This document shows positions 9,928 through 49,095 of a stretch of 64,000 nt of DNA, piece by piece. A program made the position numbers and the translations under genes. The notes under the pieces are model-generated. The model searched no databases and was not told where the DNA came from. It was given only the letters and a program-made list of their open reading frames with translations. Source of the DNA: Lytechinus pictus. Its lineage: Eukaryota. The number at the start of each line of letters is the position of its first letter. The stretch's first letter is position 1. The DNA lies in contig NC_087258.1 in the NCBI RefSeq assembly GCF_037042905.1, positions 14,384,001-14,448,000 of the forward strand. Direction: 5' to 3'.

Positions 9928-9967
9928 CTGAAAACAAATAAAGTACGGACGAATTATGGAGTACTTG

Positions 9968-16794: not shown

Positions 16795-17068
16795 TCATTC
16801 TAATTTTGACTTTCTACTGTTTAAGCATCGGGATGGACATCGTATACAGCATGAATAAACAAGGAAGGTGGTAACGAGAAGGATGGCGCCGATGAACGCT
16901 AAGACGTCAATGGAATTAAGTTGGATGAAGTTGAGTTGCAGTGCTCTAGATCTCAGGTGTGATCCGCCATGTTTGAGGATATGTTCAACCCAGTAGACTA
17001 TAGTTTCCTCAGGGTCAGATTGGGTATCTTTGTAGATTCTTGAATATTTGATGATATTATCCCTGTAA
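16795..17068 (-). CDS. UGT: UGT last exon, proximal (exon 5a): TM helix and ER-retrieval tail
   Basis: Acceptor TTTGTTTTCAG, phase 2 matches exon 4; ..VYWVEHILKHGGSHLRSRALQLNFIQLNSIDVLAFIGAILLVTTFLVYSCCIRCPSRCLNSRKSKLE*; AATAAA on the minus strand at 16516-16521. Confidence 0.93.
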
Positions 17069-17108
17069 CTGAAAACAAATAAAGTACGGACGAATTATGG
17101 AGTACTTG

Positions 17109-17270
17109 CATTGGCGGCGGAAGCCAAAAATTTTAGGGGGGGACCTCAAAAAAAAAATTGACAAGCAAAAAAAAAAAAAAAAAGGTAATCAACAAAAAAT
17201 TTAGGGGGGATCGTCCCCCACCTAAAATTTAGGGGGGACACGTCCCCCCCCCCCGCTTCCGCCGCCTTTG
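17109..17270. mobile_element. hAT-like MITE (duplicate of 9968-10136)
   Basis: Same TIRs and AGTACTTG TSD (17101-17108, 17271-17278). Confidence 0.85.
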
Positions 17271-17874
17271 AGTACTTGGCAATCTTAATAAGCAAGCGAA
17301 CAAACTTGTTGTATTTTTAAAATGGAAAGATCCACGCCTATTTTGTTTATTTATTTTTGTTTTTATTTTATTTCATTTTCAGGTATACATTATACTCGTA
17401 ACAATTAAAGTCAAATTCATTACATTGACAATAATCATCATACAATATCTAATATACAATATAAGAAAACAAATTAAAACATTAAAAAAAGGAAAGAATA
17501 CCAGCTAATGCCTGGGGATTATCAAAAGAAAGTTTCTGTTAAAAGACTCTCCTCATTAGCTGGTGCTAAAAAAGAACACTAACACTTAAATACAGTTCAA
17601 CAAATAACAAATACAAATGATAGTTGAAGACATAATAATGACATTGAAGACATAATAATGACATTTGAAGACATAATCGCCTATGACAGAACTTAATAGA
17701 AGATAAACAGCGATGTGTATAGAAAGCTGGCCACCCTGGATAAAATTGGCAGACATGGCTTAAATTCTTTCGAAATTGAGTAGAGAGGTAAGATTTTCAA
17801 TCATCAGTGAGTGAGGATGTGTTAGCATGCATAGTGAAATATCAACCTGCTGCCATTAATTCTCCACAAGAATG

Positions 17875-18176
17875 NNNNNNNNNNNNNNNNNNNNNNNNNN
17901 NNNNNNNNNNNNNNNNNNNNNNNNNNNNNNNNNNNNNNNNNNNNNNNNNNNNNNNNNNNNNNNNNNNNNNNNNNNNNNNNNNNNNNNNNNNNNNNNNNNN
18001 NNNNNNNNNNNNNNNNNNNNNNNNNNNNNNNNNNTAACACCTACTTTATTAGAGTCTCTATGAGCTCTACAGTGATTTTTTTGTGTGCGGCATATTTACC
18101 CTGGTTTTAGCAGAATACCTACCAAGTACAGATTCCCCTCACCTGGGTTGAGTGTAGCACAATGTGGATAAACTTC
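17875..18176 (-). mobile_element. Degenerate SINE 3' half with simple-repeat tail (tail N-masked)
   Basis: The reverse complement TTATCCACATTGTGCTACACTCAACCCAGGTGAGG resembles the core of the SINE at 21041; the (TAT/TAC)n tail is visible in copy A at 10680-10770. Confidence 0.6.
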
Positions 18177-18254
18177 AACTAAACGACATAAGGTAATTTC
18201 ATTAGTTATTTTTTTATTTGAACAAATTATTGCTATTGGTGTTGGTCCTCTTAC

Positions 18255-18474
18255 CTTTGATTTACCAGGACATCCGTGATCACTTCCCTCACGTTCTCGT
18301 CGGTAGCGTAGAATCTGTTGAGAATCCTTCCAATTCCCTTAGTCTTGACCTTGACAGCATTGGACGCTTGATCAAATATCACTGGCATGACGACCAGTGG
18401 TACAGCATGGTATATAGCTTCTAGAATGCCTCGCAAACCGCCATGATATATCATCAATCTTGCTTTAGGGTGAC
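18255..18474 (-). CDS. UGT: UGT common exon 4 (UDP-sugar-binding signature)
   Basis: TGACAG acceptor, AG/GTAAGA donor, 220 nt; GHPKARLMIYHGGLRGILEAIYHAVPLVVMPVIFDQASNAVKVKTKGIGRIL. Confidence 0.95.
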
Positions 18475-18691
18475 CTGTCATTAAACATAGCAAACATTTA
18501 CATATATTAAAAAAAATAACATCCCCTCATCAAATTCATGGGAGAGTATTATTAAGCAAAGAGTGATTTGTCACTGATAAGTTTGCTCTGAAAATGAAAA
18601 TATATTGACATCCTATAACAATATAGCTATATGAAAACACTGAAATTTTCTTTAATATGATACCCTCCCCGGTTAGGCGTTGAGTTGCGTC

Positions 18692-18883
18692 CAGTGGCGG
18701 ATCCGGGGGGGGGGGCACATCCGGTCCGTGCCCCCCCCCCCCCTCTTTTGAGAGACATAGTCAATATTTTTAATGTAAACATGTCGTTCATATACACAAG
18801 TGATGACCTTTGGTTTTTTTTGTAATTTTTTTTCTAGAAAAAATGTGCCCCCCTTTAAAAAAAAAATCCTGGATTCGCCCCTG
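18692..18883. mobile_element. hAT-like MITE in UGT intron 3
   Basis: TIRs CAGTGGCGGATCC / GGATTCGCCCCTG; 8-bp TSD GTTGCGTC / GTTGCATC. Confidence 0.8.
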
Positions 18884-20100
18884 GTTGCATCTAATGTTTC
18901 ATTTCTGTTTATATCCAACACGAATTATATACTGGGTTTATGCGTATTCAGATAAATAGTTTTCTATTTGAAAAGTGCATTATGATTTTAGCCATACACG
19001 ACCCCAAAGAGTAAGGAAGGAAGCAGGAACTACATATTGCATTATAATTATTGCTTTCTTCGCCGTGAGTGTGGGAGGAAGAGGGGGGGGGGGGTGATCA
19101 TCACATCTATGTTTTTTCCTCAAGTTTGGGTAAATCATCTAGACACATTTTTAGCGGTTCCGTTACATTTTTTTCGGCGACAATGGTTCCGCTGGAAAAC
19201 CTGTATGCTAAGCTAAACATGGGCCTGAAACTTAACCTCCAATTCTAAATCCCAATACTTATCTTAGCATAAATCTAAAACCAAATACTTTATCACAATC
19301 CTAACTCTAACCCTATGCCCTCTGAAATATTAAGACAGGAGCAAAGTTCGCACGAGAAAAATATCGTGTCACTGTTTTGAGCAGTATTGTGTATGGTGTG
19401 TTGGCGTATTCTTCAATAGGGGCAACAGAAAAAAATTATTTTTTTTAATGATAAAGTCGAACGTTTCGGTAGCACAATGAGTTAAAAAAAGTTGAGGGCC
19501 TGGGGCAACATAAGTCGTCTGGGGCAAAATTTATCGATCAACCAAAATGTTGACCTTTTGAATACACAAATCCAATTCTGTGATAGATTTCGACATAATA
19601 TTCAGAAAATAGAATAATATATTACCCCATTTTCATTTCATTTTCACCCCCTTTCTCCCTATATTCCGGGGTTGAGATAGATTTGGGGTCCATGTCACCC
19701 CCACCTCCTTGCGCCCCCATCTGTACCAGTGTTGTCAGGTCCAAACTGAAGAAAATCCCCTAAAGGCACTAAAAAATCCCCCAAATTGAATTCCAAATCC
19801 CCAAATTTTTCAAATCACAATTTCTTTCGTTGCCAACTAACTAGTTCGCTGAGGTACAATCTCTGTGTTAACTATATCTACAGTAGATCGTATATTATTA
19901 GCGTTATCGCCGGATGCGTCGGACGTTATATAACTGAAAAATAACACTTTTTTTTTTGCTTTTCAACAAAACCTTCCAAAATCCCCTAAAATAGACAAAA
20001 AAACCAAAAATTTAGTTTGATTCCCAAATATTTTTTCATCCCCAAATGCTTCTGGAAATCCCAATTTGTTTAATGGCAATGCCAATATCGAGCAGCTTAC

Positions 20101-20263
20101 CAAGTATGTCGTTCTGGGGTATCCAGTCTACGATCAACGTGTTATTGCCAAGGTGACGGGGGCGTGGCCCAATATACCGCCAGATCACTCTCTGTGGAAG
20201 CTCACTGAAGACTCTGGCGAAGACCTCTGCCATATGTAATGGCACCCGCGTAAAATAAGAGCC
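20101..20263 (-). CDS. UGT: UGT common exon 3
   Basis: Acceptor CTTCTCTCGTACATCAG, donor GTAAGC, 163 nt; GSYFTRVPLHMAEVFARVFSELPQRVIWRYIGPRPRHLGNNTLIVDWIPQNDIL(G). Confidence 0.95.
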
Positions 20264-20345
20264 CTGATGTACGAGAGAAGATACAAACTTTAACTGAAGG
20301 ATAGTCTATTAAGGAAGGCCTCCATGGTTATTCGTATCTATAGAA

Positions 20346-20564
20346 GGCGCGATAGCTCAGTCGGTAGAGCGGGGGATTCGTATTCCGGTGATCCGGGTTC
20401 GATTCCCACTTGGTGCGCTAGTTCCCTTTGGTAAGGCATTAATCCTCAGTACCAGGTCCTTCGGAGAGGACCTTCAGCCGTCGGTCCTCTGGTTGCTTGC
20501 TTACAAGCATTCATGCTTTCTTAGCAATCAGGTAAAAAAATCCCCACCAATCAATCAACCAATC
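20346..20564 (+). mobile_element. tRNA-derived SINE
   Basis: Pol III A box TAGCTCAGTCGG and B box GGTTCGATTCC, followed by a non-tRNA body and a (CAAT)n tail. Confidence 0.8.
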
Positions 20565-21040
20565 TAGCGGTTAAGGTGAGATTTTTAATGAAAAAAGGTA
20601 ACCCTTTTAATATGATCGAACATATCATGTGCACTTAAAATGATGATAATGAAATATAAACCTGTGTATATTAGGTAGATTATGGGGGAGGGATCTCTGT
20701 ATCAAATTTAAATTATGATATATATTCACTTTTCAGTGGTTTATAATTAGTTAGGCATTATTGTTGCTGTTTTTATGTAAATCGAATGGCAAATGAGAAA
20801 TATGGAATAAATGAAATGAAAAAGAACACAAATAATATTCATGAAGAAATGCATACAACTGTTTCACTGAAATAATGCAAAATTTTCTTTTATAGAATGC
20901 CATGTCTTTGTTATCCCTTCTCCGATTTTGAAGAAATGTTCAGTGTTTTGATGTCTGATTTTACTTTTATTTGTTCCAAACATTATTTTCACCCAGGAGT
21001 ACCCCAATAATTTGAATGTATCAAGATTTGACTGTCATGT

Positions 21041-21375
21041 GGGTGCGTCGTGGTCTAGTGGTTCTGACTCTCGCCTTTCAAACACAGGGTCGTGGGTTCG
21101 AATCCTAGCCATGGCGTGTTTTCCTTCAGCAAGAAATTTATCAGCACTGTGCTGCACTCGACCCAGGTGAGGTAAATGGGTACCGGCATGAAGTAATTCC
21201 TCAAAAAGCTGTGCGCACCAGAATCGGTAGACTAGCATAGCCGGGGTAATAAAGGAGCGCCTTGAACACCTAGCAAGGTGGATACGTGCGCTATACAAAT
21301 CCTATATTATTATTATTATTATCATTTTTATTATTATTATCATTATTATTATTGTTATTATTATTATCATTATAA
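21041..21375 (+). mobile_element. tRNA-derived SINE with L2-like 3' end and (TAT)n tail
   Basis: A box TGGTCTAGTGG, B box GGTTCGAATCC, core GCACTCGACCCAGGTGAGGTAAATGGGTACC, end GCGCTATACAAAT plus (TAT)n. Confidence 0.88.
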
Positions 21376-21396
21376 AAATAATTGGAAATATCTTAC

Positions 21397-21453
21397 CAGT
21401 GAGAATATGATGAAACCATGTTCTCCAGATCCCTCAATAAATTCTTTGTATTT
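21397..21453 (-). CDS. UGT: UGT common exon 2
   Basis: Acceptor TCTCTCATCTTTTGTAG, donor GTAAGA, 57 nt, phase 0/0; KYKEFIEGSGEHGFIIFSL, homologous to the conserved SGEHGxVVFSLGS motif. Confidence 0.92.
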
Positions 21454-21571
21454 CTACAAAAGATGAGAGAAAAATTATGAGGATCAACTTGATAATCATG
21501 TCTACCCTATATACGCGTAGAGTTATTGAGTATACTCTGTATATTGTAGCCTCAATAGAGCCATATTTCAA

Positions 21572-22103
21572 AATTCTTCTTCTCCCTCTTCTTCTCCTTT
21601 TTCTTCTTGAAGTTGTTGTTGTTCATCTTCNNNNNNNNNNNNNNNNNNNNNNNNNNNNNNNNNNNNNNNNNNNNNNNNNNNNNNNNNNNNNNNNNNNNNN
21701 NNNNNNNNNNNNNNNNNNNNNNNNNNNNNNNNNNNNNNNNNNNNNNNNNNNNNNNNNNNNNNNNNNNNNNNNNNNNNNNNNNNNNNNNNNNNNNNNNNNN
21801 NNNNNNNNNNNNNNNNNNNNNNNNNNNNNNNNNNNNNNNNNNNNNNNNNNNNNNNNNNNNNNNNNNNNNNNNNNNNNNNNNNNNNNNNCTTCTTCTTTTT
21901 CTTATTTCCTTCTTCNNNNNNNNNNNNNNNNNNNNNNNNNNNNNNNNNNNNNNNNNNNNNNNNNNNNNNNNNNNNNNNNNNNNNNNNNNNNNNNNNNNNN
22001 NNNNNNNNNNNNNNNNNNNNNNNNNNNNNNNNNNNNNNNNNNNNNNNNNNNNNNNNNNNNNNNNNNNNNNNNNNNNNNNNNNNNNNNNNNNNNNNNNNNN
22101 NNN
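21572..22103. repeat. (CTT)n low-complexity tract, largely N
   Basis: CTT-rich flanks around N runs 21631-21888 and 21916-22103. Confidence 0.7.
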
Positions 22104-22417
22104 TCCGTCACTTTGTATTCGGCTCCCTCAGCGCTTCGCGCAAATCTACAAATGAAATTGTTAATTCACAAGAATTCTGTATGTATTATTATCATTTCGA
22201 TTTGAAAATATCAATGTCGAGTCCGATACTGCATTAGGAATATGTAGGGCCTGGAGTGTAAAATTCTTGATAGATCACAATCGATATAGGTTTGAATTCT
22301 AGTCATATCAATTTGGAAAACTTTCATCCACACTTGCATTTGCTCCACCCACACGTGTACAGGAAAGAAAGTATGGGTATAGCCATAAGCTATAGATATA
22401 ATCATCATGTAGTTTAC

Positions 22418-23269
22418 CTTGTCTAACGGTCTTGCTGGGACACCGACCGTATTTCCGATAGCTACCCAGTTGGGTGCTGTTGGGTGAGGGAAATCAAAGG
22501 CAAAGCTCGTCATGCACATCCACAACTCTGCATCTCCTACGAGCTCTTGGGTGCTTCGTCCTGGAGCAATACCATGCGCGTCCTTTATCTCGTCTAAAGC
22601 TCCGAAGTGAACCCACCCTAAAAATCTCGACACAAGGTTATGGTCCATGAAGCTGGCAACCCGCTCCAGAAACGTCATCTGATCTGATAAGGGGAGTGAA
22701 TATTGTACGTACGATGAAGGCGCTGGAATCCCGTAGAGGCGTTCGTGAAAAAGAAAATATCTCGTTGTCGTCGTCACAGCTATGTGCGGTATACCTAGGT
22801 AACTACTGAGGATCGCATCACATCCGTCAACGACATCCCCGATCAGGATATCAAAATGTGATTCCTTCAGCCGAAACAGAACAGCGGAGTCCTCAAGGAG
22901 ACTTTGGCAAGCTAACCTTATCCAAGAGTACAGTTTCCCTATATCTATCATATTACTTAACGGACCCTTCTGAAAGAAATCCTCTATCATGGTGTCCAGG
23001 GTGCCCTCGTATCCTGAAGGAACATCGAAGCGGTAGTGGAGGGCGGTGTTGTAGGTGTCCCTCGGGAAGCCTTCTGTTCCTACAAATGAGCAGGTCAGGA
23101 TGGTGACGTTGTGGCCGCGACTGCTCAATGCTCCTGTTATAGCGGACATGCTTTTAGGATGACTGGTGTATTCTGGAACTAAGACAGTAACAAGGATATT
23201 TGCAGCATTGGTCAAAGAGGTGAATGCTATAGTCAGTAACGTGAACTTGGTGAATGTTACGAGTTTCAT
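22418..23269 (-). CDS. UGT: UGT variable exon 1, copy 1 (most proximal)
   Basis: ATG, signal peptide MKLV..TNA, 284 codons ending PARPLDK, donor AAG/GTAAAC in phase 0; R70 N74 G218. Confidence 0.93.
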
Positions 23270-23370
23270 CTTGCCCGTAGCGATTCCTTGTAGATTTCAA
23301 TTGTATATTATGAGTGGCATTCTTTAAATCATGCCAATCCACCGAACATGCCGAACAGATTGTCATCAAA

Positions 23371-23377
23371 TGAGTCA
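23371..23377. promoter_or_regulatory. AP-1 consensus ~100 bp upstream of the exon-1 ATG, present in every unit
   Basis: TGAGTCA is kept even in the diverged upstream flank of copy 10; a 7-mer match only. Confidence 0.25.
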
Positions 23378-23700
23378 CAGTAAAGCTCTACAGATCACTC
23401 ATTCATGTCATTATTCACTCCTTTTTTGGTTTGCAAACGTTTCCGCTGAGCCATATACATGTAGATATGCTTCAGCACCCCCGATTCCCAGGGCCATTAT
23501 GTGGAAGAGCTGTATTCACATCATATTTCTCATGCGCATGTTTTGCAAGAAAACATCTTGTTGATTGGATCGTAGACCTCTTGGTCTACGAGTAGATGGT
23601 CTAATTCTCAGGGTTAGGATTTCTTTTAACCTCCTTTTTAGTCCTTAAATATACTTTGTTATTCTGATCCGCCTTCACTCCCTTCAGTGTATGAAAAGAA

Positions 23701-24546
23701 AACAGAGGAACAGCTACAGCTGAACTATCTACAAAATCTATTTATCATGCATTGAAACGCTGATTGAACAGTTATTATTCATCATTTCCTTCATTCTGGC
23801 ATGAAAATGGAATTATCTCAAGTAGCAAGAAAATAAACTGGACAGAAATATATGCCCCACCAAAGATAAAAAAGGGCGGAGACACACAATATAAGCTACT
23901 CCACAATGTTTGCCATCTTTACCAGTTCTTCACCATTTTAACAAGGACATTCCGATACAGTTCAGATGGTGCTTTGAGACTGGGACCATCATCCATCTAT
24001 TCATACAGTGCCCGGCCATCCAGTAATCCCTCAACGTTTTACATCGTCTGATTCACCGACTCATTCCGAACATTAATATCGACTTCGATTTATACTGGGC
24101 ACTGGTTCCTCATGCTTCGGGCCGCTGCAAGGAAGCCGTGCGTTTATGTAACTTTTTGTTAATTAGTTTCAAAAGTACCATTTATTGGCTGTATCGTACT
24201 TTGAATCTTTCAGATCCCCTATTGGTTTGGAAATTCAAATTGAAAAGCATGAATTTTCTTGATTATGAGTTTTTTAAGTTACAAAATAACGATACTGCCT
24301 TCTCAAAGCGATGGTTCGTGAACAATGCCCTTTGTTCTGTCGGCACTTCTTTTGAGTTAGTTTGGTCATTTTGAATGTAGGAATGTAGGCCTACTGTTAC
24401 TTTACTGGTTGTTAAACGTTATTTCTTGGTTTGTTTTTAATGAGTCCTTATTTGTACTTACGAAGTATATTATTCTGATATTTTATTTGTATATATGTTA
24501 TAGTTTGCTTGTAAATAAAGTTTCATTTTGAAAAGTAAAAAAAAAA
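23701..24546 (+). mobile_element. Tx1-clade LINE 3' fragment with polyA, one per array junction (also from ~26310, 28883, 31453, 34024, 36595, 39166, 41740, 44348)
   Basis: Frameshifted ORF2 C-terminus WTEIYAPPKIKKGGDTQYKLLHNV/LPSLPVLHHF..WCFETGTIIHLFIQCP..FSKRWxVxNALCSV, then a T-rich UTR, AATAAA and an A-run joined to (CTT)n. Confidence 0.8.
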
Positions 24547-25029
24547 GTCTTCTTCTTCTTCTTCCTCTTCTTCTTCATGTTCTTCTTCATATCTTCTTCT
24601 TCTTCGTCGTCTTCTTCTTCTTCCTCTTCTTTTTCTTCTTAACGTTTTCTACTTTTTCGTCTTCTCCTTCCTTTCTTTTTCATTCTTCTTCTTCTTCCTA
24701 TATTTCATCTTTCTCTGTCACTTTGTATTCGGCTCCCTCAGCGCTTCGCGCAAGTCAAAAAATGAAATTGTTAATTCACGAGAATTCTGTATGTATTATT
24801 ATCATTTCGATTTCAGAATATCAATGTCGAGTCCGATACTGCATTAGGAATGTGTAGGGCCTGGAGTGTAAAATTCTTGATGGATCACAATAATCATATA
24901 GGTTTGAACTCTAGTCATATCAATTTGGAAAACTTTCATCCACACTTGCATTTGCTCCACCCACACGTGTACAGGAAAGAAAGTATGGGTATAGCCATAA
25001 GCTATGTATATACTCATCATGTAGTTTAC

Positions 25030-25881
25030 CTTGTCTAACGGTCTTGCTGGGACACCGACCGTATTTCCGATAGCTACCCAGTTGGGTGCTGTTGGGTGAG
25101 GGAAATCAAAGGCAAAGCTCGTCATGCACATCCACAACTCTGCATCTCCTACGAGCTCTTGGGTGCTTCGTCCTGGAGCAATACCATGCGCGTCCTTTAT
25201 CTCGTCTAAAGCTCCGAAGTGAACCCACTCTAAAAATCTCGACACAAGGTTATGGTCCATGAAGCTGGCAACCCGCTCCAGAAACGTCATCTGATCTGAT
25301 AAGGGGAGTGAATATTGTACGTACGATGAAGGCGCTGGAATCCCGTAGAGGCGTTCGTGAAAAAGAAAATATCTCGTTGTCGTCGTCACAGCTATGTGCG
25401 GTATACCTAGGTAACTACTGAGGATCGCATCACATCCGTCAACGACATCCCCGATCAGGATATCAAAATGTGATTCCTTCAGCCGAAACAGAACAGCGGA
25501 GTCCTCAAGGAGACTTTGGCAAGCTAACCTTATCCAAGAGTACAGTTTCCCTATATCTATCATATTACTTAACGGACCCTTCTGAAAGAAATCCTCTATC
25601 ATGGTGTCCAGGGTGCCCTCGTATCCTGAAGGAACATCGAAGCGGTAGTGGAGGGCGGTGCTGTAGGTGTCCATCGGGAAGCCTTCTGTTCCTACAAATG
25701 AGCAGGTCAGGATGGTGACGTTGTGGCCGCGACTGCTCAATGCTCCTGTTATAGCGGACATGCTTTTAGGATGACTGGTGTATTCTGGAACTAAGACAGT
25801 AACAAGGATATTTGCAGCATTGGTCAAAGAGGTGAATGCTATAGTCAGTAACGTGAACTTGGTGAATGTTACGAGTTTCAT
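25030..25881 (-). CDS. UGT: UGT variable exon 1, copy 2
   Basis: Intact 852 nt, same donor; M70 S74 E218. Confidence 0.88.
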
Positions 25882-27602: not shown

Positions 27603-28454
27603 CTTGTCTAACGGTCTTGCTGGGACACCGACCGTATTTCCGATAGCTACCCAGTTGGGTGCTGTTGGGTGAGGGAAATCAAAGGCAAAGCTCGTCATGC
27701 ACATCCACAACTCTGCATCTCCTACGAGCTCTTGGGTGCTTCGTCCTGGAGCAATACCATGCGCGTCCTTTATCTCGTCTAAAGCTCCGAAGTGAACCCA
27801 CCCTAAAAATCTCGACACAAGGTTATGGTCCATGAAGCTGGCAACCCGCTCCAGAAACGTCATCTGATCTGATAAGGGGAGTGAATATTGTACGTACGAT
27901 GAAGGCGCTGGAATCCCGTAGAGGCGTTCGTGAAAAAGAAAATATCTCGTTGTCGTCGTCACAGCTATGTGCGGTATACCTAGGTAACTACTGAGGATCG
28001 CATCACATCCGTCAACGACATCCCCGATCAGGATATCAAAATGTGATTCCTTCAGCCGAAACAGAACAGCGGAGTCCTCAAGGAGACTTTGGCAAGCTAA
28101 CCTTATCCAAGAGTACAGTTTCCCTATATCTATCATATTACTTAACGGACCCTTCTGAAAGAAATCCTCTATCATGGTGTCCAGGGTGCCCTCGTATCCT
28201 GAAGGAACATCGAAGCGGTAGTGGAGGGCGGTGCTGTAGGTGTCCATCGGGAAGCCTTCTGTTCCTACAAATGAGCAGGTCAGGATGGTGACGTTGTGGC
28301 CGCGACTGCTCAATGCTCCTGTTATAGCGGACATGCTTTTAGGATGACTGGTGTATTCTGGAACTAAGACAGTAACAAGGATATTTGCAGCATTGGTCAA
28401 AGAGGTGAATGCTATAGTCAGTAACGTGAACTTGGTGAATGTTACGAGTTTCAT
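27603..28454 (-). CDS. UGT: UGT variable exon 1, copy 3
   Basis: Intact 852 nt; M70 S74 G218. Confidence 0.88.
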
Positions 28455-30172: not shown

Positions 30173-31024
30173 CTTGTCTAACGGTCTTTCTGGGACACCG
30201 ACCGTATTTCCGATAGCTACCCAGTTGGGTGCTGTTGGGTGAGGGAAATCAAAGGCAAAGCTCGTCATGCACATCCACAACTCTGCATCTCCTACGAGCT
30301 CTTGGGTGCTTCGTCCTGGAGCAATACCATGCGCGTCCTTTATCTCGTCTAAAGCTCCGAAGTGAACCCACCCTAAAAATCTCGACACAAGGTTATGGTC
30401 CATGAAGCTGGCAACCCGCTCCAGAAACGTCATCTGATCTGATAAGGGGAGTGAATATTGTACGTACGATGAAGGCGCTGGAATCCCGTAGAGGCGTTCG
30501 TGAAAAAGAAAATATCTCGTTGTCGTCGTCACAGCTATGTGCGGTATACCTAGGTAACTACTGAGGATCGCATCACATCCGTCAGCGACATCCCCGATCA
30601 GGATATCAAAATGTGATTCCTTCAGCCGAAACAGAACAGCGGAGTCCTCAAGGAGACTTTGGCAAGCTTACCTTATCCAAGAGTACATTTTCCCTATATC
30701 TATCATATTACTTAACGGACCCTTCTGAAAGAAATCCTCTATCATGGAGTCCAGGGTGGCCTCGTGTCCTGAAGGAACATCGAAGCGGTACTGGAGGGCG
30801 GTGTTGTAGGTGTCCATCGGGAAGCCTTTTGTTCCTACAAATGAGCAGGTCAGGATGGTGACGTTGTAGCCGCGACTGCTCAATGCTCCTGTTATAGCGG
30901 ACATGCTTTTAGGATGACTGGTGTATTCTGGAACTAAGACAGTAACAAGGATATTTGCAGCATTGGTCAAAGAGGTGAATGCTATAGTCAGTAACGTGAA
31001 CTTGGTGAATGTTACGAGTTTCAT
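30173..31024 (-). pseudogene. UGT: UGT variable exon 1, copy 4, pseudo-exon (L119*)
   Basis: TTA>TAA at 30668-30670; otherwise carries the copy-10 variant block plus Y53 and E279. Confidence 0.88.
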
Positions 31025-32743: not shown

Positions 32744-33595
32744 CTTGTCTAACGGTCTTGCTGGGACACCGACCGTATTTCCGATAGCTACCCAGTTGGG
32801 TGCTGTTGGGTGAGGGAAATCAAAGGCAAAGCTCGTCATGCACATCCACAACTCTGCATCTCCTACGAGCTCTTGGGTGCTTCGTCCTGGAGCAATACCA
32901 TGCGCGTCCTTTATCTCGTCTAAAGCTCCGAAGTGAACCCACTCTAAAAATCTCGAGACAAGTTTATGGTCCATGAAGCTGGCAACCCGCTCCAGAAACG
33001 TCATCTGATCTGATAAGGGGAGTGAATATTGTACGTACGATGAAGGCGCTGGAATCCCGTAGAGGCGTTCGTGAAAAAGAAAATATCTCGTTGTCGTCGT
33101 CACAGCTATGTGCGGTATACCTAGGTAACTACTGAGGATCGCATCACATCCGTCAACGACATCCCCGATCAGGATATCAAAATGTGATTCCTTCAGCCGA
33201 AACAGAACAGCGGAGTCCTCAAGGAGACTTTGGCAAGCTAACCTTATCCAAGAGTACAGTTTCCCTATATCTATCATATTACTTAACGGACCCTTCTGAA
33301 AGAAATCCTCTATCATGGTGTCCAGGGTGCCCTCGTATCCTGAAGGAACATCGAAGCGGTAGTGGAGGGCGGTGCTGTAGGTGTCCATCGGGAAGCCTTC
33401 TGTTCCTACAAATGAGCAGGTCAGGATGGTGACGTTGTGGCCGCGACTGCTCAATGCTCCTGTTATAGCGGACATGCTTTTAGGATGACTGGTGTATTCT
33501 GGAACTAAGACAGTAACAAGGATATTTGCAGCATTGGTCAAAGAGGTGAATGCTATAGTCAGTAACGTGAACTTGGTGAATGTTACGAGTTTCAT
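32744..33595 (-). CDS. UGT: UGT variable exon 1, copy 5
   Basis: Intact 852 nt; M70 S74 K211 E218. Confidence 0.88.
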
Positions 33596-35314: not shown

Positions 35315-36166
35315 CTTGTCTAACGGTCTTGCTGGGACACCGACCGTATTTCCGATAGCTACCCAGTTGGGTGCTGTTGGGTGAGGGAAATCAAAGGCAA
35401 AGCTCGTCATGCACATCCACAACTCTGCATCTCCTACGAGCTCTTGGGTGCTTCGTCCTGGAGCAATACCATGCGCGTCCTTTATCTCGTCTAAAGCTCC
35501 GAAGTGAACCCACTCTAAAAATCTCGACACAAGGTTATGGTCCATGAAGCTGGCAACCCGCTCCAGAAACGTCATCTGATCTGATAAGGGGAGTGAATAT
35601 TGTACGTACGATGAAGGCGCTGGAATCCCGTAGAGGCGTTCGTGAAAAAGAAAATATCTCGTTGTCGTCGTCACAGCTATGTGCGGTATACCTAGGTAAC
35701 TACTGAGGATCGCATCACATCCGTCAACGACATCCCCGATCAGGATATCAAAATGTGATTCCTTCAGCCGAAACAGAACAGCGGAGTCCTCAAGGAGACT
35801 TTGGAAAGCTAACCTTATCCAAGAGTACAGTTTCCCTATATCTATCATATTACTTAACGGACCCTTCTGAAAGAAATCCTCTATCATGGTGTCCAGGGTG
35901 CCCTCGTATCCTGAAGGAACATCGAAGCGGTAGTGGAGGGCGGTGCTGTAGGTGTCCATCGGGAAGCCTTCTGTTCCTACAAATGAGCAGGTCAGGATGG
36001 TGACGTTGTGGCCGCGACTGCTCAATGCTCCTGTTATAGCGGACATGCTTTTAGGATGACTGGTGTATTCTGGAACTAAGACAGTAACAAGGATATTTGC
36101 AGCATTGGTCAAAGAGGTGAATGCTATAGTCAGTAACGTGAACTTGGTGAATTTTACGAGTTTCAT
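35315..36166 (-). CDS. UGT: UGT variable exon 1, copy 6
   Basis: Intact 852 nt; K5 M70 S74 F121 E218. Confidence 0.88.
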
Positions 36167-37885: not shown

Positions 37886-38737
37886 CTTGTCTAACGGTCT
37901 TGCTGGGACACCGACCGTATTTCCGATAGCTACCCAGTTGGGTGCTGTTGGGTGAGGGAAATCAAAGGCAAAGCTCGTCATGCACATCCACAACTCTGCA
38001 TCTCCTACGAGCTCTTGGGTGCTTCGTCCTGGAGCAATACCATGCGCGTCCTTTATCTCGTCTAAAGCTCCGAAGTGAACCCACTCTAAAAATCTCGACA
38101 CAAGGTTATGGTCCATGAAGCTGGCAACCCGCTCCAGAAACGTCATCTGATCTGATAAGGGGAGTGAATATTGTACGTACGATGAAGGCGCTGGAATCCC
38201 GTAGAGGCGTTCGTGAAAAAGAAAATATCTCGTTGTCGTCGTCACAGCTATGTGCGGTATACCTAGGTAACTACTGAGGATCGCATCACATCCGTCAACG
38301 ACATCCCCGATCAGGATATCAAAATGTGATTCCTTCAGCCGAAACAGAACAGCGGAGTCCTCAAGGAGACTTTGGAAAGCTAACCTTATCCAAGAGTACA
38401 GTTTCCCTATATCTATCATATTACTTAACGGACCCTTCTGAAAGAAATCCTCTATCATGGTGTCCAGGGTGCCCTCGTATCCTGAAGGAACATCGAAGCG
38501 GTAGTGGAGGGCGGTGCTGTAGGTGTCCATCGGGAAGCCTTCTGTTCCTACAAATGAGCAGGTCAGGATGGTGACGTTGTGGCCGCGACTGCTCAATGCT
38601 CCTGTTATAGCGGACATGCTTTTAGGATGACTGGTGTATTCTGGAACTAAGACAGTAACAAGGATATTTGCAGCATTGGTCAAAGAGGTGAATGCTATAG
38701 TCAGTAACGTGAACTTGGTGAATTTTACGAGTTTCAT
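37886..38737 (-). CDS. UGT: UGT variable exon 1, copy 7
   Basis: Intact 852 nt; protein identical to copy 6. Confidence 0.85.
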
Positions 38738-40456
38738 CTTGCCCGTAGCGATTCCTTGTAGATTTCAATTGTATATTATGAGTGGCATTCTTTAAATCAT
38801 GCCAATCCACCGAACATGCCGAACAGATTGTCATCAAATGAGTCACAGTAAAGCTCTACAGATCACTCATTCATGTCATTATTCACTCCTTTTTTGGTTT
38901 GCAAACGTTTCCGCTGAGCCATATACATGTAGATATGCTTCAGCACCCCCGATTCCCAGGGCCATGATGTGGAAGAGCTGTAATCACATCATATTTATCA
39001 TGTGCATGTTTTGCAAGAAAACATCTTGTTGATTGGATCGTAGACCTCTTGGTCTACGAGTAGATGGTCTAATTCTCAGGGTTAGGATTTCTTTTAACCT
39101 CCTTTTTAGTCCTTAAATATACTTTATTCTGATCCGCCTTCACTCCCTTCAGTGTACTAAAAGAAAACAGAGGAACAGCTACATCTGAACTATCTACAAA
39201 ATCTATTTATCATGCATTGAAACGCTGATTGAACAGTTATTATTCATCATTTCCTTCATTCTGGCATGAAAATGGAATTATCTCAAGTAGCAAGAAAATA
39301 AACTGGACAGAAATATATGCCCCACCAAAGATAAAAAAGGGCGGAGACACACAATATAAGCTACTCCACAATGTTTGCCATCTTTACCAGTTCTTCACCA
39401 TTTTAACAAGGACATTCCGATACAGTTCAGATGGTGCTTTGAGACTGGGACCATCATCCATCTATTCATACAGTGCCCGGCCATCCAGTACTCCCTCAAC
39501 GTTTTACATCGTCTGATTCACCGACTCATTCCGAACATTAATATCGACTTCGATTTATACTGGGCACTGGTTCCTCATGCTTCGGGCCGCTGCAAGGAAG
39601 CCGTGCGTTTATGTAACTTTTTGTTAATTAGTTTCAAAAGTACCATTTATTGGCTGTATCGTACTTTGAATCTTTCAGATCCCCTATTGGTTTGGAAATC
39701 CAAATTGAAAAGTAGGAATTTTCTTGTTTATGAGTTTTTTAAGTTACAAAATAACGATACTGCCTTCTCAAAGCGATGGTGCGTGAAAAATGCCCTTTGT
39801 TCTGTCGGCACCTCTTTGAGTTAGTTTGGTCATTTTGAATGTATGAATGTAGGCCTACTGTAACTTTACTGGTTGTTTGACGTTATTTCTTGGTTTGTTT
39901 TTAATGAGTCCTTATTTGTACTTACGAAGTATATTATTCTGATATTTTATTTGAATATATGTTATAGTTTGCTTGTAAATAAAGTTTCATTTTGAAAAGT
40001 AAAAAAAAGTCTTCTTCTTCTTCTTCCTCTTCTTCTTCTTCATATTTTCTTCTTCGTCTTCTTCTTGCTCTTCTTCTTATCTTTTTCTTCTTTGTCGTCT
40101 TCTTCTTCTTTTCTTTTTCATTCTTCTTCTTCCTATATTTTCATCTTTCTCTGTCACTTTGTATTCGGCTCCCTCAGCGCTTCGCGCAAATCTAAAAATG
40201 AAATTGTTAAGTCACGAGAATGTATTATTATCATTTCGATTTCAGAATATCAATGTCGAGTCCGATACTGCATTAGGAATGTGTAGGGCCTGGAGTGTAA
40301 AATTATTGATAGATCACAATCGATATAGGTTTGAATTCTAGTCATATCAATTTGGAAAACTTTCATCCACACTTGCATTTGCTCCACCCACACGTGTACA
40401 GGAAAGAAAGTATGGGTATAGCCATAAGCTATAGATATAATCATCATGTAGTTTAC

Positions 40457-41308
40457 CTTGTCTAACGGTCTTGCTGGGACACCGACCGTATTTCCGATAG
40501 CTACCCAGTTGGGTGCTGTTGGGTGAGGGAAATCAAAGGCAAAGCTCGTCATGCACATCCACAACTCTGCATCTCCTACGAGCTCTTGGGTGCTTCGTCC
40601 TGGAGCAATACCATGCGCGTCCTTTATCTCGTCTAAAGCTCCGAAGTGAACCCACTCTAAAAATCTCGACACAAGGTTATGGTCCATGAAGCTGGCAACC
40701 CGCTCCAGAAACGTCATCTGATCTGATAAGGGGAGTGAATATTGTACGTACGATGAAGGCGCTGGAATCCCGTAGAGGCGTTCGTGAAAAAGAAAATATC
40801 TCGTTGTCGTCGTCACAGCTATGTGCGGTATACCTAGGTAACTACTGAGGATCGCATCACATCCGTCAGCGACATCCCCGATCAGGATATCAAAATGTGA
40901 TTCCTTCAGCCGAAACAGAACAGCGGAGTCCTCAAGGAGACTTTGGCAAGCTAACCTTATCCAAGAGTACAGTTTCCCTATATCTATCATATTACTTAAC
41001 GGACCCTTCTGAAAGAAATCCTCTATCATGGTGTCCAGGGTGCCCTCGTATCCTGAAGGAACATCGAAGCGGTAGTGGAGGGCGGTGTTGTAGGTGTCCC
41101 TCGGGAAGCCTTCTGTTCCTACAAATGAGCAGGTCAGGATGGTGACGTTGTGGCCGCGACTGCTCAATGCTCCTGTTATAGCGGACATGCTTTTAGGATG
41201 ACTGGTGTATTCTGGAACTAAGACAGTAACAAGGATATTTGCAGCATTGGTCAAAGAGGTGAATGCTATAGTCAGTAACGTGAACTTGGTGAATGTTACG
41301 AGTTTCAT
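40457..41308 (-). CDS. UGT: UGT variable exon 1, copy 8
   Basis: Intact 852 nt; R70 N74 A147 E218. Confidence 0.88.
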
Positions 41309-43067
41309 CTTGCCCGTAGCGATTCCTTGTAGATTTCAATTGTATATTATGAGTGGCATTCTTTAAATCATGCCAATCCACCGAACATGCCGAACAGATT
41401 GTCATCAAATGAGTCACAGTAAAGCTCTACAGATCACTCATTCATGTCATTATTCACTCCTTTTTTGGTTTGCAAACGTTTCCGCTGAGCCATATACATG
41501 TAGATATGCTTCAGCACCCCCGATTCCCAGGGCCATTATGTGGAAGAGCTGTATTCACATCATATTTCTCATGCGCATGTTTTGCAAGAAAACATCTTGT
41601 TGATTGGATCGTAGACCTCTTGGTCTACGAGTAGATGGTCTAATTCTCAGGGTTAGGATTTCTTTTAACCTCCTTTTTAGTCCTTAAATATACTTTGTTA
41701 TTCTGATCCGCCTTCACTCCCTTCAGTGTATGAAAAGAAAACAGAGGAACAGCTACAGCTGAACTATCTACAAAATCTATTTATCATGCATTGAAACGCT
41801 GATTGAACAGTTATTATTCATCATTTCCTTCATTCTGGCATGAAAATGGAATTATCTCAAGTAGCAAGAAAATAAACTGGACAGAAATATATGCCCCACC
41901 AAAGATAAAAAGGGCGGAGACACACAATATAAGCTACTCCACAATGTTTGCCATCTTTACCAGTTCTTCACCATTTTAACAAGGACATTCCGATACAGTT
42001 CAGATGGTGCTTTGAGACTGGGACCATCATCCATCTATTCATACAGTGCCCGGCCATCCAGTAATCCCTCAACGTTTTACATCGTCTGATTCACCGACTC
42101 ATTCCGAACATTAATATCGACTTCGATTTATACTGGGCACTGGTTCCTCATGCTTCGGGCCGCTGCAAGGAAGCCGTGCGTTTATGTAACTTTTTGTTAA
42201 TTAGTTTCAAAAGTACCATTTATTGGCCGTATCGTACTTTGAATCTTTCAGATCCCCTATTGGTTTGGAAATTCAAATTGAAAAGCATGAATTTTCTTGA
42301 TTATGAGTTTTTTAAGTTACAAAATAACGATACTGCCTTCTCAAAGCGATGGTTCGTGAACAATGCCCTTTGTTCTGTCGGCACTTCTTTTGAGTTAGTT
42401 TGGTCATTTTGAATGTAGGAATGTAGGCCTACTGTTACTTTACTGGTTGTTAAACGTTATTTCTTGGTTTGTTTTTAATGAGTCCTTATTTGTACTTACG
42501 AAGTATATTATTCTGATATTTTATTTGTATATATGTTATAGTTTGCTTGTAAATAAAGTTTCATTTTGAAAAGTAAAAAAAAAAGTCTTCTTCTTCTTCT
42601 TCCTCTTCTTCTTCATGTTCTTCTTCATATCTTCTTCTTCTTCGTCGTCTTCTTCTTCTTCCTCTTCTTTTTCTTCTTAACGTTTTCTACTTTTTCGTCT
42701 TCTCCTTCCTTTCTTTTTCATTCTTCTTCTTCTTCCTATATTTCATCTTTCTCTGTCACTTTGTATTCGACTCCCTCAGCGCTTCGCGCAAGTCAAAAAA
42801 TGAAATTGTTAATTCACGAGAATTCTGTATGTATTATTATCATTTCGATTTCAGAATATCAATGTCGAGTCCGATACTGCATTAGGAATGTGTAGGGCCT
42901 GGAGTGTAAAATTCTTGATGGATCACAATAATCATATAGGTTTGAACTCTAGTCATATCAATTTGGAAAACTTTCATCCACACTTGCATTTGCTCCACCC
43001 ACACGTGTACAGGAAAGAAAGTATGGGTATAGCCATAAGCTATGGATACACTCATCATGTAGTTTAC

Positions 43068-43919
43068 CTTGTCTAACGGTCTTGCTGGGACACCGACCGT
43101 ATTTCCGATAGCTACCCAGTTGGGTGCTGTTGGGTGAGGGAAATCAAAGGCAAAGCTCGTCATGCACATCCACAACTCTGCATCTCCTACGAGCTCTTGG
43201 GTGCTTCGTCCTGGAGCAATACCATGCGCGTCCTTTATCTCGTCTAAAGCTCCGAAGTGAACCCACTCTAAAAATCTCGACACAAGGTTATGGTCCATGA
43301 AGCTGGCAACCCGCTCCAGAAACGTCATCTGATCTGATAAGGGGAGTGAATATTGTACGTACGATGAAGGCGCTGGAATCCCGTAGAGGCGTTCGTGAAA
43401 AAGAAAATATCTCGTTGTCGTCGTCACAGCTATGTGCGGTATACCTAGGTAACTACTGAGGATCGCATCACATCCGTCAACGACATCCCCGATCAGGATA
43501 TCAAAATGTGATTCCTTCAGCCGAAACAGAACAGCGGAGTCCTCAAGGAGACTTTGGCAAGCTAACCTTATCCAAGAGTACAGTTTCCCTATATCTATCA
43601 TATTACTTAACGGACCCTTCTGAAAGAAATCCTCTATCATGGTGTCCAGGGTGCCCTCGTATCCTGAAGGAACATCGAAGCGGTAGTGGAGGGCGGTGCT
43701 GTAGGTGTCCATCGGGAAGCCTTTTGTTCCTACAAATGAGCAGGTCAGGATGGTGACGTTGTGGCCGCGACTGCTCAATGCTCCTGTTATAGCGGACAAG
43801 CTTTTAGGATGACTGGTGTATTCTGGAACTAAGACAGTAACAAGGATATTTGCAGCATTGGTCAAAGAGGTGAATGCTATAGTCAGTAACGTGAACTTGG
43901 TGAATGTTACGAGTTTCAT
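43068..43919 (-). CDS. UGT: UGT variable exon 1, copy 9
   Basis: Intact 852 nt; L41 K66 M70 S74 E218. Confidence 0.88.
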
Positions 43920-45638
43920 CTTGCCCGTAGCGATTCCTTGTAGATTTCAATTGTATATTATGAGTGGCATTCTTTAAATCATGCCAATCCACCGAACATG
44001 CCGAACAGATTGTCATCAAATGAGTCACAGTAAAGCTCTACAGATCACTCATTCATGTCATTATTCACTCCTTTTTTGGTTTGCAAACGTTTCCGCTGAG
44101 CCATATACATGTAGATATGCTTCAGCACCCCCGATTCCCAGGGCCATGATGTGGAAGAGCTGTAATCACATCATATTTCTCATGTGCATGTTTTGCAAGA
44201 AAACATCTTGTTGATTGGATCGTAGACCTCTTGGTCTACGAGTAGATGGTCTAATTCTCAGGGTTAGGATTTCTTTTAACCTCCTATTTAGTCCTTAAAT
44301 ATACTTTATTCTGATCCGCCTTCACTCCCTTCAGTGTATGAAAAGAAAACAGAGGAACAGCTACATCTGAACTATCTACAAAATCTATTTATCATGCATT
44401 GAAACGCTGATTGAACAGTTATTATTCATCATTTCCTTCATTCTGGCATGAAAATGGAATTATCTCAAGTAGCAAGAAAATAAACTGGACAGAAATATAT
44501 GCCCCACCAAAGATAAAAAAGGGCGGAGATACACAATATAAGTTACTCTACAATGTTTGCCATCTTTACCAGTTCTTCACCATTTTAACAAGGACATTCC
44601 GATACAGTTCAGATGGTGCTTTGAGACTGGGACCATCATCCATCTATTCATACAGTGCCCGGCCATCCAGTACTCCCTCAACGTTTTACATCGTCTGATT
44701 CACCGACTCATTCCGAACATTAATATCGACTTCGATTTATACTGGGCACTGGTTCCTCATGCTTCGGGCCGCTGCAAGGAAGCCGTGCGTTTATGTAACT
44801 TTTTGTTAATTAGTTTCAAAAGTACCATTTATTGGCTGTATCGTACTTTGAATCTTTCAGATCCCCTATTGGTTTGGAAATCCAAATTGAAAAGTAGGAA
44901 TTTTCTTGTTTATGAGTTTTTTAAGTTACAAAATAACGATACTGCCTTCTCAAAGCGATGGTGCGTGAAAAATGCCCTTTGTTCTGTCGGCACCTCTTTG
45001 AGTTAGTTTGGTCATTTTGAATGTATGAATGTAGGCCTACTGTAACTTTACTGGTTGTTTGACGTTATTTCTTGGTTTGTTTTTAATGAGTCCTTATTTG
45101 TACTTACGAAGTATATTATTCTGATATTTTATTTGAATATATGTTATAGTTTGCTTGTAAATAAAGTTTCATTTTGAAAAGTCAAAAAAAGTCTTCTTCT
45201 TCTTCTTCCTCTTCTTCTTCTTCATATTTTCTTCTTCGTCTTCTTCTTGCTCTTCTTCTTATCTTTTTCTTCTTTGTCGTCTTCTTCTTCTTTTCTTTTT
45301 CATTCTTCTTCTTCCTATATTTTCATCTTTCTCTGTCACTTTGTATTCGGCTCCCTCAGCGCTTCGCGCAAATCTAAAAATGAAATTGTTAAGTCACGAG
45401 AATGTATTATTATCATTTCGATTTCAGAATATCAATGTCGAGTCCGATACTGCATTAGGAATGTGTAGGGCCTGGAGTGTAAAATTCTTGATAGATCACA
45501 ATCGATATAGGTTTGAATTCTAGTCATATCAATTTGGAAAACTTTCATCCACACTTGCATTTGCTCCACCCACACGTGTACAGGAAAGAAAGTATGGGTA
45601 TAGCCATAAGCTATAGATATAATCATCATGTAGTTTAC

Positions 45639-46490
45639 CTTGTCTAACGGTCTTGCTGGGACACCGACCGTATTTCCGATAGCTACCCAGTTGGGTGCTG
45701 TTGGGTGAGGGAAATCAAAGGCAAAGCTCGTCATGCACATCCACAACTCTGCATCTCCTACGAGCTCTTGGGTGCTTCGTCCTGGAGCAATACCATGCGC
45801 GTCCTTTATCTCGTCTAAAGCTCCGAAGTGAACCCACCCTAAAAATCTCGACACAAGGTTATGGTCCATGAAGCTGGCAACCCGCTCCAGAAACGTCATC
45901 TGATCTGATAAGGGGAGTGAATATTGTACGTACGATGAAGGCGCTGGAATCCCGTAGAGGCGTTCGTGAAAAAGAAAATATCTCGTTGTCGTCGTCACAG
46001 CTATGTGCGGTATACCTAGGTAACTACTGAGGATCGCATCACATCCGTCAGCGACATCCCCGATCAGGATATCAAAATGTGATTCCTTCAGCCGAAACAG
46101 AACAGCGGAGTCCCCAAGGAGACTTTGGCAAGCTAACCTTATCCAAGAGTACATTTTCCCTATATCTATCATATTACTTAACGGACCCTTCTGAAAGAAA
46201 TCCTCTATCATGGAGTCCAGGGTGGCCTCGTGTCCTGAAGGAACATCGAAGCGGTACTGGAGGGCGGTGTTGTAGGTGTCCATCGGGAAGCCTTTTGTTC
46301 CTACAAATGAGCAGGTCAGGATGGTGACGTTGTGGCCGCGACTGCTCAATGCTCCTGTTATAGCGGACATGCTTTTAGGATGACTGGTGTATTCTGGAAC
46401 TAAGACAGTAACAAGGATATTTGCAGCATTGGTCAAAGAGGTGAATGCTATAGTCAGTAACATGAACTTGGTGAATGTTACGAGTTTCAT
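45639..46490 (-). CDS. UGT: UGT variable exon 1, copy 10 (most distal, unique upstream flank)
   Basis: Intact 852 nt; M10 K66 M70 Q78 H87 A89 S93 M113 G126 A147. Confidence 0.92.
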
Positions 46491-46728
46491 CTTGCCAGCG
46501 GCGATTCTTTGTAGACTCCTATTGTATATTGTAAGTGGTATTCTTCAAATCATGCCAATCCACCGAACATGCCGAACAAATTGTCATCAAATGAGTCAAA
46601 GTAAAGCTCTACAGATCACTCATGTATGTCATTATTCACTCCTTTTTGGTTTGCAAACGTTTCCGCTGACCCCATAGAGCACTCCTTGTATTTATAATCA
46701 ATTAAAACGTTATTGATCACAATTCAAT

Positions 46729-47922: not shown

Positions 47923-48712
47923 TCTACAATGACTTTCAATTGAAATTGACATACAAACAAAGGGCCATGTTGCATAAAAACGCTGTCATGGTAACTTTAC
48001 CAACCAATTTTAATACTGCTCATCAGCCAATGAAAATCAAGGATTTTATATATTTCCAATTGGATGGAAAAGTTATCATCAAAGTAACTTTTGTACAATA
48101 TGGCCCCGCCAAATGCGCAGGTTTGCTTTCTCTGCCAGCCATAGTCAACCTGCGGTTTCCCAAAGAAAACAGTCCTTGCCCGATAAGTTTGATCAAGAAG
48201 GAAGTCACTAAAATGTTTTCGGGATCAGAACGGCGAATGAGATACAAAGAGTTAAACTAGTTTACCTGAGCTTTAGACAAACGAAATCGATTTTCCTGAA
48301 GAAAAAGTTAGATGAGAGGGGCATGTAGTTTCTCCATAATTTAATAAGGATATTGTCAGGTATAAGAGCACATATTCCATTGAGGACTATGAGAAGTATA
48401 TGCTGAATACTTATGAAAGAGCATCGACCTGGGATAGATTTTCGAACAGAAACCCTTGCTGGTTTGGAAGTAGATTCGACAAGCCCCCCCCCAAAAAAAA
48501 AAAAATAATAATAATAATAACAATAATAAATAAAATAAAATAATAATAAAAAAATAAATATAAAAAGTGATTATGGTCAGATTCATTTTTTACAAGTAAA
48601 AAGAAAGTAAGAAAGAAAAAAGCTCCAAAATGCAAAATGAAAGTGATTTGGGGAAAAAATGTAGCATACCAGCCTAGTTTCCAGGGGATGCTGTCTAGAC
48701 GGTGTATAACAT

Positions 48713-49064: not shown

Positions 49065-49095
49065 TGCACGCAGCAACCCCAGAAAACTCTTGGGG

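Follow-up and report, generated by a model that had tools for sequence, protein, structure and literature searches.

In vertebrates, variable/constant clusters such as UGT1A and the protocadherins are a textbook route to protein diversity from one locus. In the vertebrate UGT1A and zebrafish Ugt clusters, a separate promoter drives each variable exon, which is then spliced to shared exons; short read-through complementary DNAs (cDNAs) of the zebrafish variable exons have also been recorded (PMC2819257). The clustered protocadherins (Pcdh alpha and gamma) likewise have variable first exons with their own promoters that are cis-spliced to shared exons (PMC2819257). The multi-first-exon state is lineage-specific within vertebrates too, and one review-style statement calls variable/constant clusters a set unique to vertebrate genomes (PMC2819257). 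In insects, Helicoverpa UGT33F2Av1/v2 and UGT46A3v1/v2 have distinct first exons and common exons 2-4 (PMC13623160). Our literature search, whose coverage was incomplete, found no description of an echinoderm UGT variable/constant cluster, although this does not prove absence. This work examines a UDP-glycosyltransferase (UGT) gene on the minus strand of a 64,000-nucleotide window of the genome of the sea urchin Lytechinus pictus (C14:14384001-14448000 of the assembly). We regard it as probable that this is a real L. pictus UGT gene whose 5′ module has been amplified to ten cassettes ahead of a single set of exons 2-4, and that the cassettes would serve as alternative first exons through cis-splicing.

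As assembled, positions 22418-46490 of the window hold, on the minus strand, ten copies of an 852-nucleotide (nt) first exon, here numbered from U1 (distal) to U10 (proximal). The exons of the gene, in window coordinates, are as follows:

45639..46490, minus strand: first exon U1, the most distal; 852 nt, ATG at 46490, intact
43068..43919, minus strand: first exon U2; ATG at 43919, intact, with an intron/spacer of the diverged U2/U9 type
40457..41308, minus strand: first exon U3; ATG at 41308, intact
37886..38737, minus strand: first exon U4; ATG at 38737, intact and identical to U5
35315..36166, minus strand: first exon U5; ATG at 36166, intact
32744..33595, minus strand: first exon U6; ATG at 33595, intact
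30173..31024, minus strand: first exon U7; ATG at 31024, broken by TAA at codon 119
27603..28454, minus strand: first exon U8; ATG at 28454, intact
25030..25881, minus strand: first exon U9; ATG at 25881, intact, with a spacer nearly identical to the U2 spacer
22418..23269, minus strand: first exon U10, proximal; ATG at 23269, the copy found in the NCBI 521-amino-acid (aa) model and in the spliced RNA contig of run X1
21397..21453, minus strand: exon 2; 57 nt, phase 0 at both ends
20101..20263, minus strand: exon 3; 163 nt
18255..18474, minus strand: exon 4; 220 nt, carrying the UGT donor-binding signature
16795..17068, minus strand: exon 5 copy A; 274 nt including the stop codon, encoding the transmembrane segment and tail
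9654..9927, minus strand: exon 5 copy B; intact, with the same acceptor, 98% identical to copy A

Each copy of exon 1 begins with its own ATG and ends in GACAAG/GTAAAC, and the donor AAG/GTAAAC is the same in 10/10 copies. Copies recur every 2570-2573 nt, except at U2 and U9, where the period is 2611/2612 nt. The first exons are 97.6-99.8% alike, with 0-13 differences over 852 nt and 96-100% identity in the encoded protein. All copies encode an N terminus that resembles a signal peptide, followed by H37 and D145, which by analogy would be the catalytic His and Asp. In U7, however, codon 119 (window 30668-30670) has changed from TTA to the premature stop TAA, which leaves nine intact reading frames rather than ten. 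Exons 2-5 have GT-AG borders throughout, and the translation obtained by joining U10 to them is exactly that of NCBI XP_063965565, a complete 521-aa protein. A tblastn search with this annotated protein returned ten copies of exon 1 and one each of exons 2, 3, and 4, and found no exon 2-5 sequence in the spacers between first exons. In the genome as a whole, exons 2-4 of this gene occur once and exon 5 is present twice.

Against the Pfam UDPGT profile (PF00201), exon 1 aligns over residues 30-283 to profile positions 5-262 (E = 1.4e-28), while exons 3, 4, and 5 cover profile positions 283-497 (E = 1.6e-14 to 1.8e-19). The best protein matches of the gene are L. pictus UGTs. With both the N- and C-terminal domains matched, the gene is, by profile assignment, a member of the UGT family. 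The 20 nt preceding each exon 1 ATG are 35-40% pyrimidine, compared to 60-85% for the four real acceptors, and the first exons thus appear to lack a convincing 3′ splice site. An AG does immediately precede every exon 1 ATG (e.g., window 23270-23271). In-frame splicing from one exon 1 to another is conceivable on account of this AG, the 284 whole codons, and the phase-0 donor, but it is unlikely given the missing pyrimidine tract, and no exon 1-to-exon 1 joint was seen.

Most of the gene anatomy proposed in a first-pass annotation of this DNA, made from the sequence alone, withstood these comparisons. It had described ten 852-nt first exons with ATG, signal peptide, H37/D145, and the AAG/GTAAAC donor, and all of these were recovered, except that the U7 frame is broken and nine remain intact. 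The absence of a polypyrimidine acceptor before the ATGs, the single set of exons 2-4, and spacers free of exon 2-5 sequence were all confirmed. Its single shared C-terminal half is correct for exons 2-4 and has to be amended for exon 5, given the second copy at 9654-9927. The high identity among copies agrees with its view of a young or homogenised array, and the exon boundary does lie where it does in UGT1A, just before SGEHG and with an exon 4 of 220 nt.

Three further observations concern the shared exons. Exon 2 is skipped in NCBI isoform X2 (502 aa) and in a paralogous L. variegatus gene, with the loss of 19 residues that include the SGEHG motif. Exon 5 copy B is carried by a segmental duplication (12525-17757 versus 7080-10607) whose two parts are 93-99.7% identical, and its product differs from that of copy A by two amino acids. 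Copy B might serve as an alternative terminal exon, or it might reflect a haplotype duplicated in the assembly; only one exon 5 is present in L. variegatus.

Among described systems, the locus most closely resembles vertebrate UGT1A, in human UGT1A1-1A13P, and the zebrafish Ugt1a/1b/2a/2b clusters, with which it shares the UGT family, tandem first exons of ∼850 nt, and one set of small shared exons. As in UGT1A, the first exon comprises the signal peptide and acceptor-binding domain with its own ATG and donor, and the exon 1/2 boundary falls just before SGEHG. Exons 2 and 3 here sum to 220 nt, and exon 4 is 220 nt; the exon sizes of human UGT1A match. Unlike in UGT1A, however, the copies are 96-100% identical in protein, the unit measures only 2.6 kb, and the distal copies are candidate rather than demonstrated alternative first exons. 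The Helicoverpa genes come from unrelated UGT families and stop at two first exons, with no near-identical copies amplified in tandem. Clustered protocadherins encode proteins unrelated to UGTs, and stochastic promoter choice in neurons is a feature of theirs. Judged on sequence, the window locus has the structure of the variable/constant class, namely tandem first exons, each with its own ATG and donor and no convincing 3′ splice site, but its first exons do not encode diversified domains (0-13 differences over 852 nt and 96-100% protein identity).

Since the copies are so similar, the features that delimit the repeated unit and the quality of the assembly around it bear directly on the count of ten:

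45192..45314, no strand assigned: (GAA)n/(TTC)n microsatellite of unit U1; one such tract per unit
21631..22103, no strand assigned: two assembly gaps (21631-21888 and 21916-22103) flanking a GAA-rich island of 27 nt; both fall within the (GAA)n tract of intron 1, after U10 and before exon 2
17875..18034, no strand assigned: third assembly gap, in intron 4
46491..49366, minus strand: U1 upstream region; segments 46491-46676 and 49096-49366 are 84-93% identical to the last 428 nt of internal units

The (GAA)n tract is the 3′ edge of the repeated unit and the border of the array that faces exon 2. None of the three gaps cuts an exon. The L. variegatus locus is colinear across all three, with microsatellite only at the first two gap sites and ∼1 kb of intron at the third; this colinearity supports the exon order and frame. 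Full units differ from one another at 6-21 of ∼2571 positions. U2 and U9 lie ∼2.4% and one 42-nt indel away from the other units, and only 6 differences separate them from each other. The substitution patterns of the copies are nested and shared, such that U2 resembles U9, U1 resembles U7, and U4 equals U5.

A count inflated by the assembly, with a true array of two to four cassettes that a long-read assembler stretched or that represents joined haplotypes, would account for the gaps directly beside the array and for the recurrence of the stretch from the U2 spacer into the start of U3 seven units away, where the U9 spacer meets the start of U10. The nearby duplication bearing exon 5 could itself be a haplotype artefact. 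We nevertheless consider this explanation very unlikely. The array sits inside 32.7 kb without N and itself spans 24 kb without N, and this, together with the structured substitutions, counts against assembler stutter; the differences are nested and shared rather than the indel noise typical of artefacts, and U2 and U9 are not identical. The unique flanks, i.e., the U1 upstream region and exons 2-4, occur once. A different sample yielded a contig that continues upstream from exon 1 into 1262 nt of spacer, the ortholog of a preceding cassette's intron; that sample must then contain at least two tandem cassettes. Several non-identical read-through products were already present in an earlier NCBI annotation.

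The distal edge of the array carries a record of its own. Upstream of U1, the two segments that match internal units are separated by ∼2.4 kb of repeat-rich DNA absent from those units. The U1 exon is 98-99% like the other copies, whereas its upstream region is only 84-93% like the internal promoters, which is what would be expected of homogenisation within the array but not at its edge. U1 also retains ancestral, L. variegatus distal-type states over bases 196-337.

The origin of the array was traced by comparison with two other sea urchins. In the L. variegatus ortholog (CM031028.1, locus L001), a single set of exons 2-5 lies behind two first exons spaced 3385 nt from each other, and NCBI annotates isoforms of 521 and 550 aa with the same end. 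This locus is like the L. pictus one in being colinear, in having five exons, and in carrying the same microsatellite after each first-exon cassette. It differs in having two cassettes with 92% protein identity and a 3385-nt period, compared to ten cassettes, ∼99% identity, and a 2571-nt period in L. pictus. Positions 1-2143 of the L. pictus unit are colinear with the L. variegatus distal exon and intron at 91% identity, and the last 428 nt correspond to sequence that lies upstream of the first exons in L. variegatus, with ∼0.8 kb lacking. In a maximum-likelihood tree, the ten L. pictus copies group together (99/99) as sister to the L. variegatus distal exon (90/91), and the partner of the L. 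variegatus proximal exon is a lone, broken copy from L. pictus contig C4 (86/81). The Strongylocentrotus purpuratus ortholog has the same five-exon structure with a single exon 1.

A two-cassette locus present in L. variegatus must be older than the split of the two Lytechinus species, and the ten copies, as read from the alignments and the tree, are a recent amplification of its distal-type cassette. Because all ten copies are of the distal type and the unit equals the ancestral period minus ∼0.8 kb, unequal crossing-over or gene conversion between cassettes most likely both expanded and homogenised the array. The single exon 1 of S. purpuratus places the origin of the multi-first-exon state within sea urchins and makes it independent of vertebrate UGT1A; the L. 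pictus array is therefore an analogue rather than a descendant of UGT1A; the state was not found to be inherited from an ancestor shared with the vertebrate cluster. The lone first exon on C4 (C4:23102538-23109818, L003/L004) is accompanied by 172 nt of intron and ∼6 kb of upstream sequence. It is 95% identical to the array, of proximal type, and situated in a gap-free region without shared exons nearby.

Variation among the copies differs from that between species. The ten first exons vary at 20 sites, of which 19 are nonsynonymous (one being the U7 stop) and 1 is synonymous; the neutral expectation for the nonsynonymous share is 77% (p = 0.04). Fixed differences from the L. variegatus distal exon comprise 10 nonsynonymous and 18 synonymous changes (Fisher p = 2.5e-5 against the among-copy ratio of 19:1), and omega between the species is ∼0.25. 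The amplification was clearly followed by a change in constraint. In a set of seven units, variability of the exon is double that of the spacer (p = 0.036), a difference not seen among the five core units. Eleven of the 19 protein-changing sites fall within residues 66-126, in the acceptor-binding half. The nonsynonymous excess can be read either as relaxed constraint and decay of redundant copies or as diversifying selection. With 19 of 20 sites nonsynonymous, diversification may be starting; the excess of protein-changing sites points to the onset of either diversification or decay.

These observations are combined in the following mechanism. A 5′ module, consisting of ∼1.3 kb of upstream DNA that includes the 5′ untranslated region (5′UTR), the 852-nt exon 1, and the first 0.3 kb of intron 1 up to the (GAA)n tract, would have been amplified into ten head-to-tail cassettes, with exon 5 occurring twice downstream. 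In U10 mRNA, the AAG/GT donor is joined onward, and the joined exons encode the complete 521-aa enzyme. The other intact cassettes match U10 in upstream sequence and donor, likewise lack a usable acceptor, and would presumably behave in the same way. A transcript starting at any intact cassette would join its own exon 1 to exon 2, and the downstream cassettes would be removed as intron. Such an outcome is annotated by NCBI for the two-cassette L. variegatus locus and for the distal first exon of a second L. pictus cluster, on contig C20 (see below). The immediate consequence would be extra promoters serving almost the same enzyme; with copies this similar, real substrate diversity is not to be expected today.

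The clearest evidence for splicing comes from a 1692-nt contig of run X1, assembled at a depth of 41. It contains 222 nt of 5′UTR and the 852 nt of exon 1, departs from the genome exactly at the donor, and continues for 618 nt more. Relative to U1, this contig shows the ten differences of U10 and no others, and three of its alleles are minority alleles in the array, which identifies U10 as the dominant source in the X1 sample. NCBI full-length models, including the isoform that skips exon 2, are also built on U10. A look-up of NCBI gene calls for the window's own 352-aa products returned none. Splicing to the shared exons was thus observed for the U10 haplotype only (RNA contig, NCBI model, and joined translation): U10, the proximal copy, is the only one demonstrated to make the enzyme, and use of the nine distal ones is putative. 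U2-U10 share one and the same sequence over at least the 259 nt that precede the ATG, with scattered differences further up, and the 5′UTR of the mRNA contig (at least 222 nt) falls within this shared sequence. A contig of run X26 contains a U8-like exon 1 with 1262 nt of upstream spacer and breaks exactly at the donor; this run could not be classified as RNA or DNA, and the contig is not counted as proof. Low-depth X1 contigs, together with the X26 contig, cover the spacer upstream of the 5′UTR, which would require transcription from an upstream cassette if the runs are RNA (DNA is possible).

Several points weigh against use of the array as a set of alternative first exons. The only clearly spliced contig has the U10 haplotype, and the other copies are modelled by NCBI as separate read-through proteins of 345-352 aa rather than as isoforms. 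Two raw RNA sequencing runs, X21 and X22, placed no reads on exon 1, other tissues not being covered. Each spacer contains four AATAAA/ATTAAA motifs, which could end upstream transcripts early. The assembly gaps abut the array on the exon 2 side, and the copy number of ten is an assembly count. Finally, loss of constraint alone could account for the nonsynonymous excess (p = 0.04 against neutrality).

Many of these points would be explained if the array were real but U10 alone made the enzyme, with U1-U9 as redundant partial duplicates that are silent, or are expressed as short read-through products without a sugar-donor domain, and are decaying. The haplotype of the spliced contig and of the NCBI full-length model, the separate truncated calls for the other copies, the poly(A)-signal motifs in the spacers, the stop codon already present in U7, and a constraint clearly relaxed relative to the between-species pattern are all in line with this reading, as are the short-form read-through cDNAs of zebrafish variable exons (PMC2819257). 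On the other hand, identity over at least 259 nt upstream of the ATG makes U2-U9, by sequence, as fit as U10 to start transcription, and distal-exon isoforms are annotated both at the L. variegatus locus and in the L. pictus C20 cluster. The 19:1 ratio goes beyond what neutral decay would give, exon variation among seven units is twice that of the spacer, and the spacer coverage in X1 and X26, if RNA, again needs transcription from an upstream cassette. We consider exclusive use of U10 possible but doubtful.

All intact cassettes could also be active as a form of dosage amplification, comparable to the amplification of detoxification genes, in which more promoters supply the same enzyme without substrate diversification. 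The 96-100% protein identity among copies (U4 equals U5), the identical promoters, and the apparently recent expansion or homogenisation of the array would fit a gain in dosage. Equal use is hard to reconcile with the dominance of U10 in the one informative RNA contig, and a purely quantitative role is hard to reconcile with the finding that nearly all differences between copies change the protein, 11 of 19 within residues 66-126. Dosage amplification thus appears rather unlikely, slightly more so than exclusive use of U10. Returning to the reading of the cassettes as alternative first exons, its strongest form, in which each of the nine intact cassettes is live and the array represents a nascent variable region under diversifying selection, is put forward only tentatively. 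If it were true, this array and the older clusters described below would mean that sea urchins have built variable/constant UGT clusters repeatedly.

The layout of the window locus is not unique to it but one of several variable/constant UGT clusters in sea urchins. A whole-genome search revealed runs of exon 1-like matches without shared exons in between. On contig C11 (C11:19908649-19929159, L005-L007), four intact and two broken first exons with 42-68% protein identity stand before a single set of three shared exons; in NCBI, the first exons of this cluster appear as separate proteins of ∼286 aa. On contig C20 (C20:12451568-12457761, L009/L010), two first exons that are 49% identical precede one shared set, and NCBI isoform XP_054754852 passes over the proximal first exon and links the distal one to the shared exons. 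The S. purpuratus "UGT 2C1" locus (AAGJ06000003.1:19236456-19277686, L011), the counterpart of the C11 cluster, comprises four first exons and one set of three shared exons. Its four NCBI products (524, 531, 522, and 583 aa) have the same end coordinate, and a direct comparison of the 524- and 531-aa products showed the last 243 residues to be common. The closest paralogs of the window gene, on contigs C5 and C2, are whole-gene duplicates with one exon 1 each.

The C11, C20, and S. purpuratus clusters are like the window locus in that one shared set is preceded by several first exons, all with an ATG of their own and with the donor at a matching position. At C20 and in S. purpuratus, the isoforms annotated by NCBI include ones that use a distal exon. 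Unlike the window locus, they contain old, diverged first exons (42-89% protein identity). They also have three shared exons rather than four, and their enzymes are distant paralogs that are ∼25% identical to the window enzyme. The first-pass annotation had presented the array as an early instance of a design for substrate diversification, arisen independently of vertebrate UGT1A. Independence is supported by the single exon 1 of the S. purpuratus ortholog, and the ten-copy amplification is indeed recent. The two-cassette version predates the species split, as L. variegatus shows, and the early state therefore holds only in part; the older diverged clusters show that the array is not a lone case, and substrate diversification finds no support in copies that are 96-100% identical in protein.

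Taken together, these loci form a series of cluster ages within sea urchins, with one first exon in the S. purpuratus ortholog, two in L. variegatus, ten in L. pictus, and older clusters at 42-89% identity. This provides a natural series for the birth of a cluster, for promoter choice and splicing across copies, and for the onset of diversification. L. pictus is a genetically workable laboratory sea urchin, and its tractability would make questions about cluster birth testable at the bench. There is also a consequence for annotation, in that distal first exons are now listed as separate truncated genes in current models.

Finally, the DNA upstream of U1 was surveyed. Open reading frames in its 2.4-kb segment have no Pfam match. 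Contigs covering window 46725-47285 and 48595-49155 reach depths of hundreds to thousands in two samples, and these very high depths mark both stretches as high-copy dispersed repeats. At window 47859-47908, raw RNA reads pile up with poly-G/poly-C loose ends and strand-switch joints, a pattern that looks like a low-complexity sequencing artefact.

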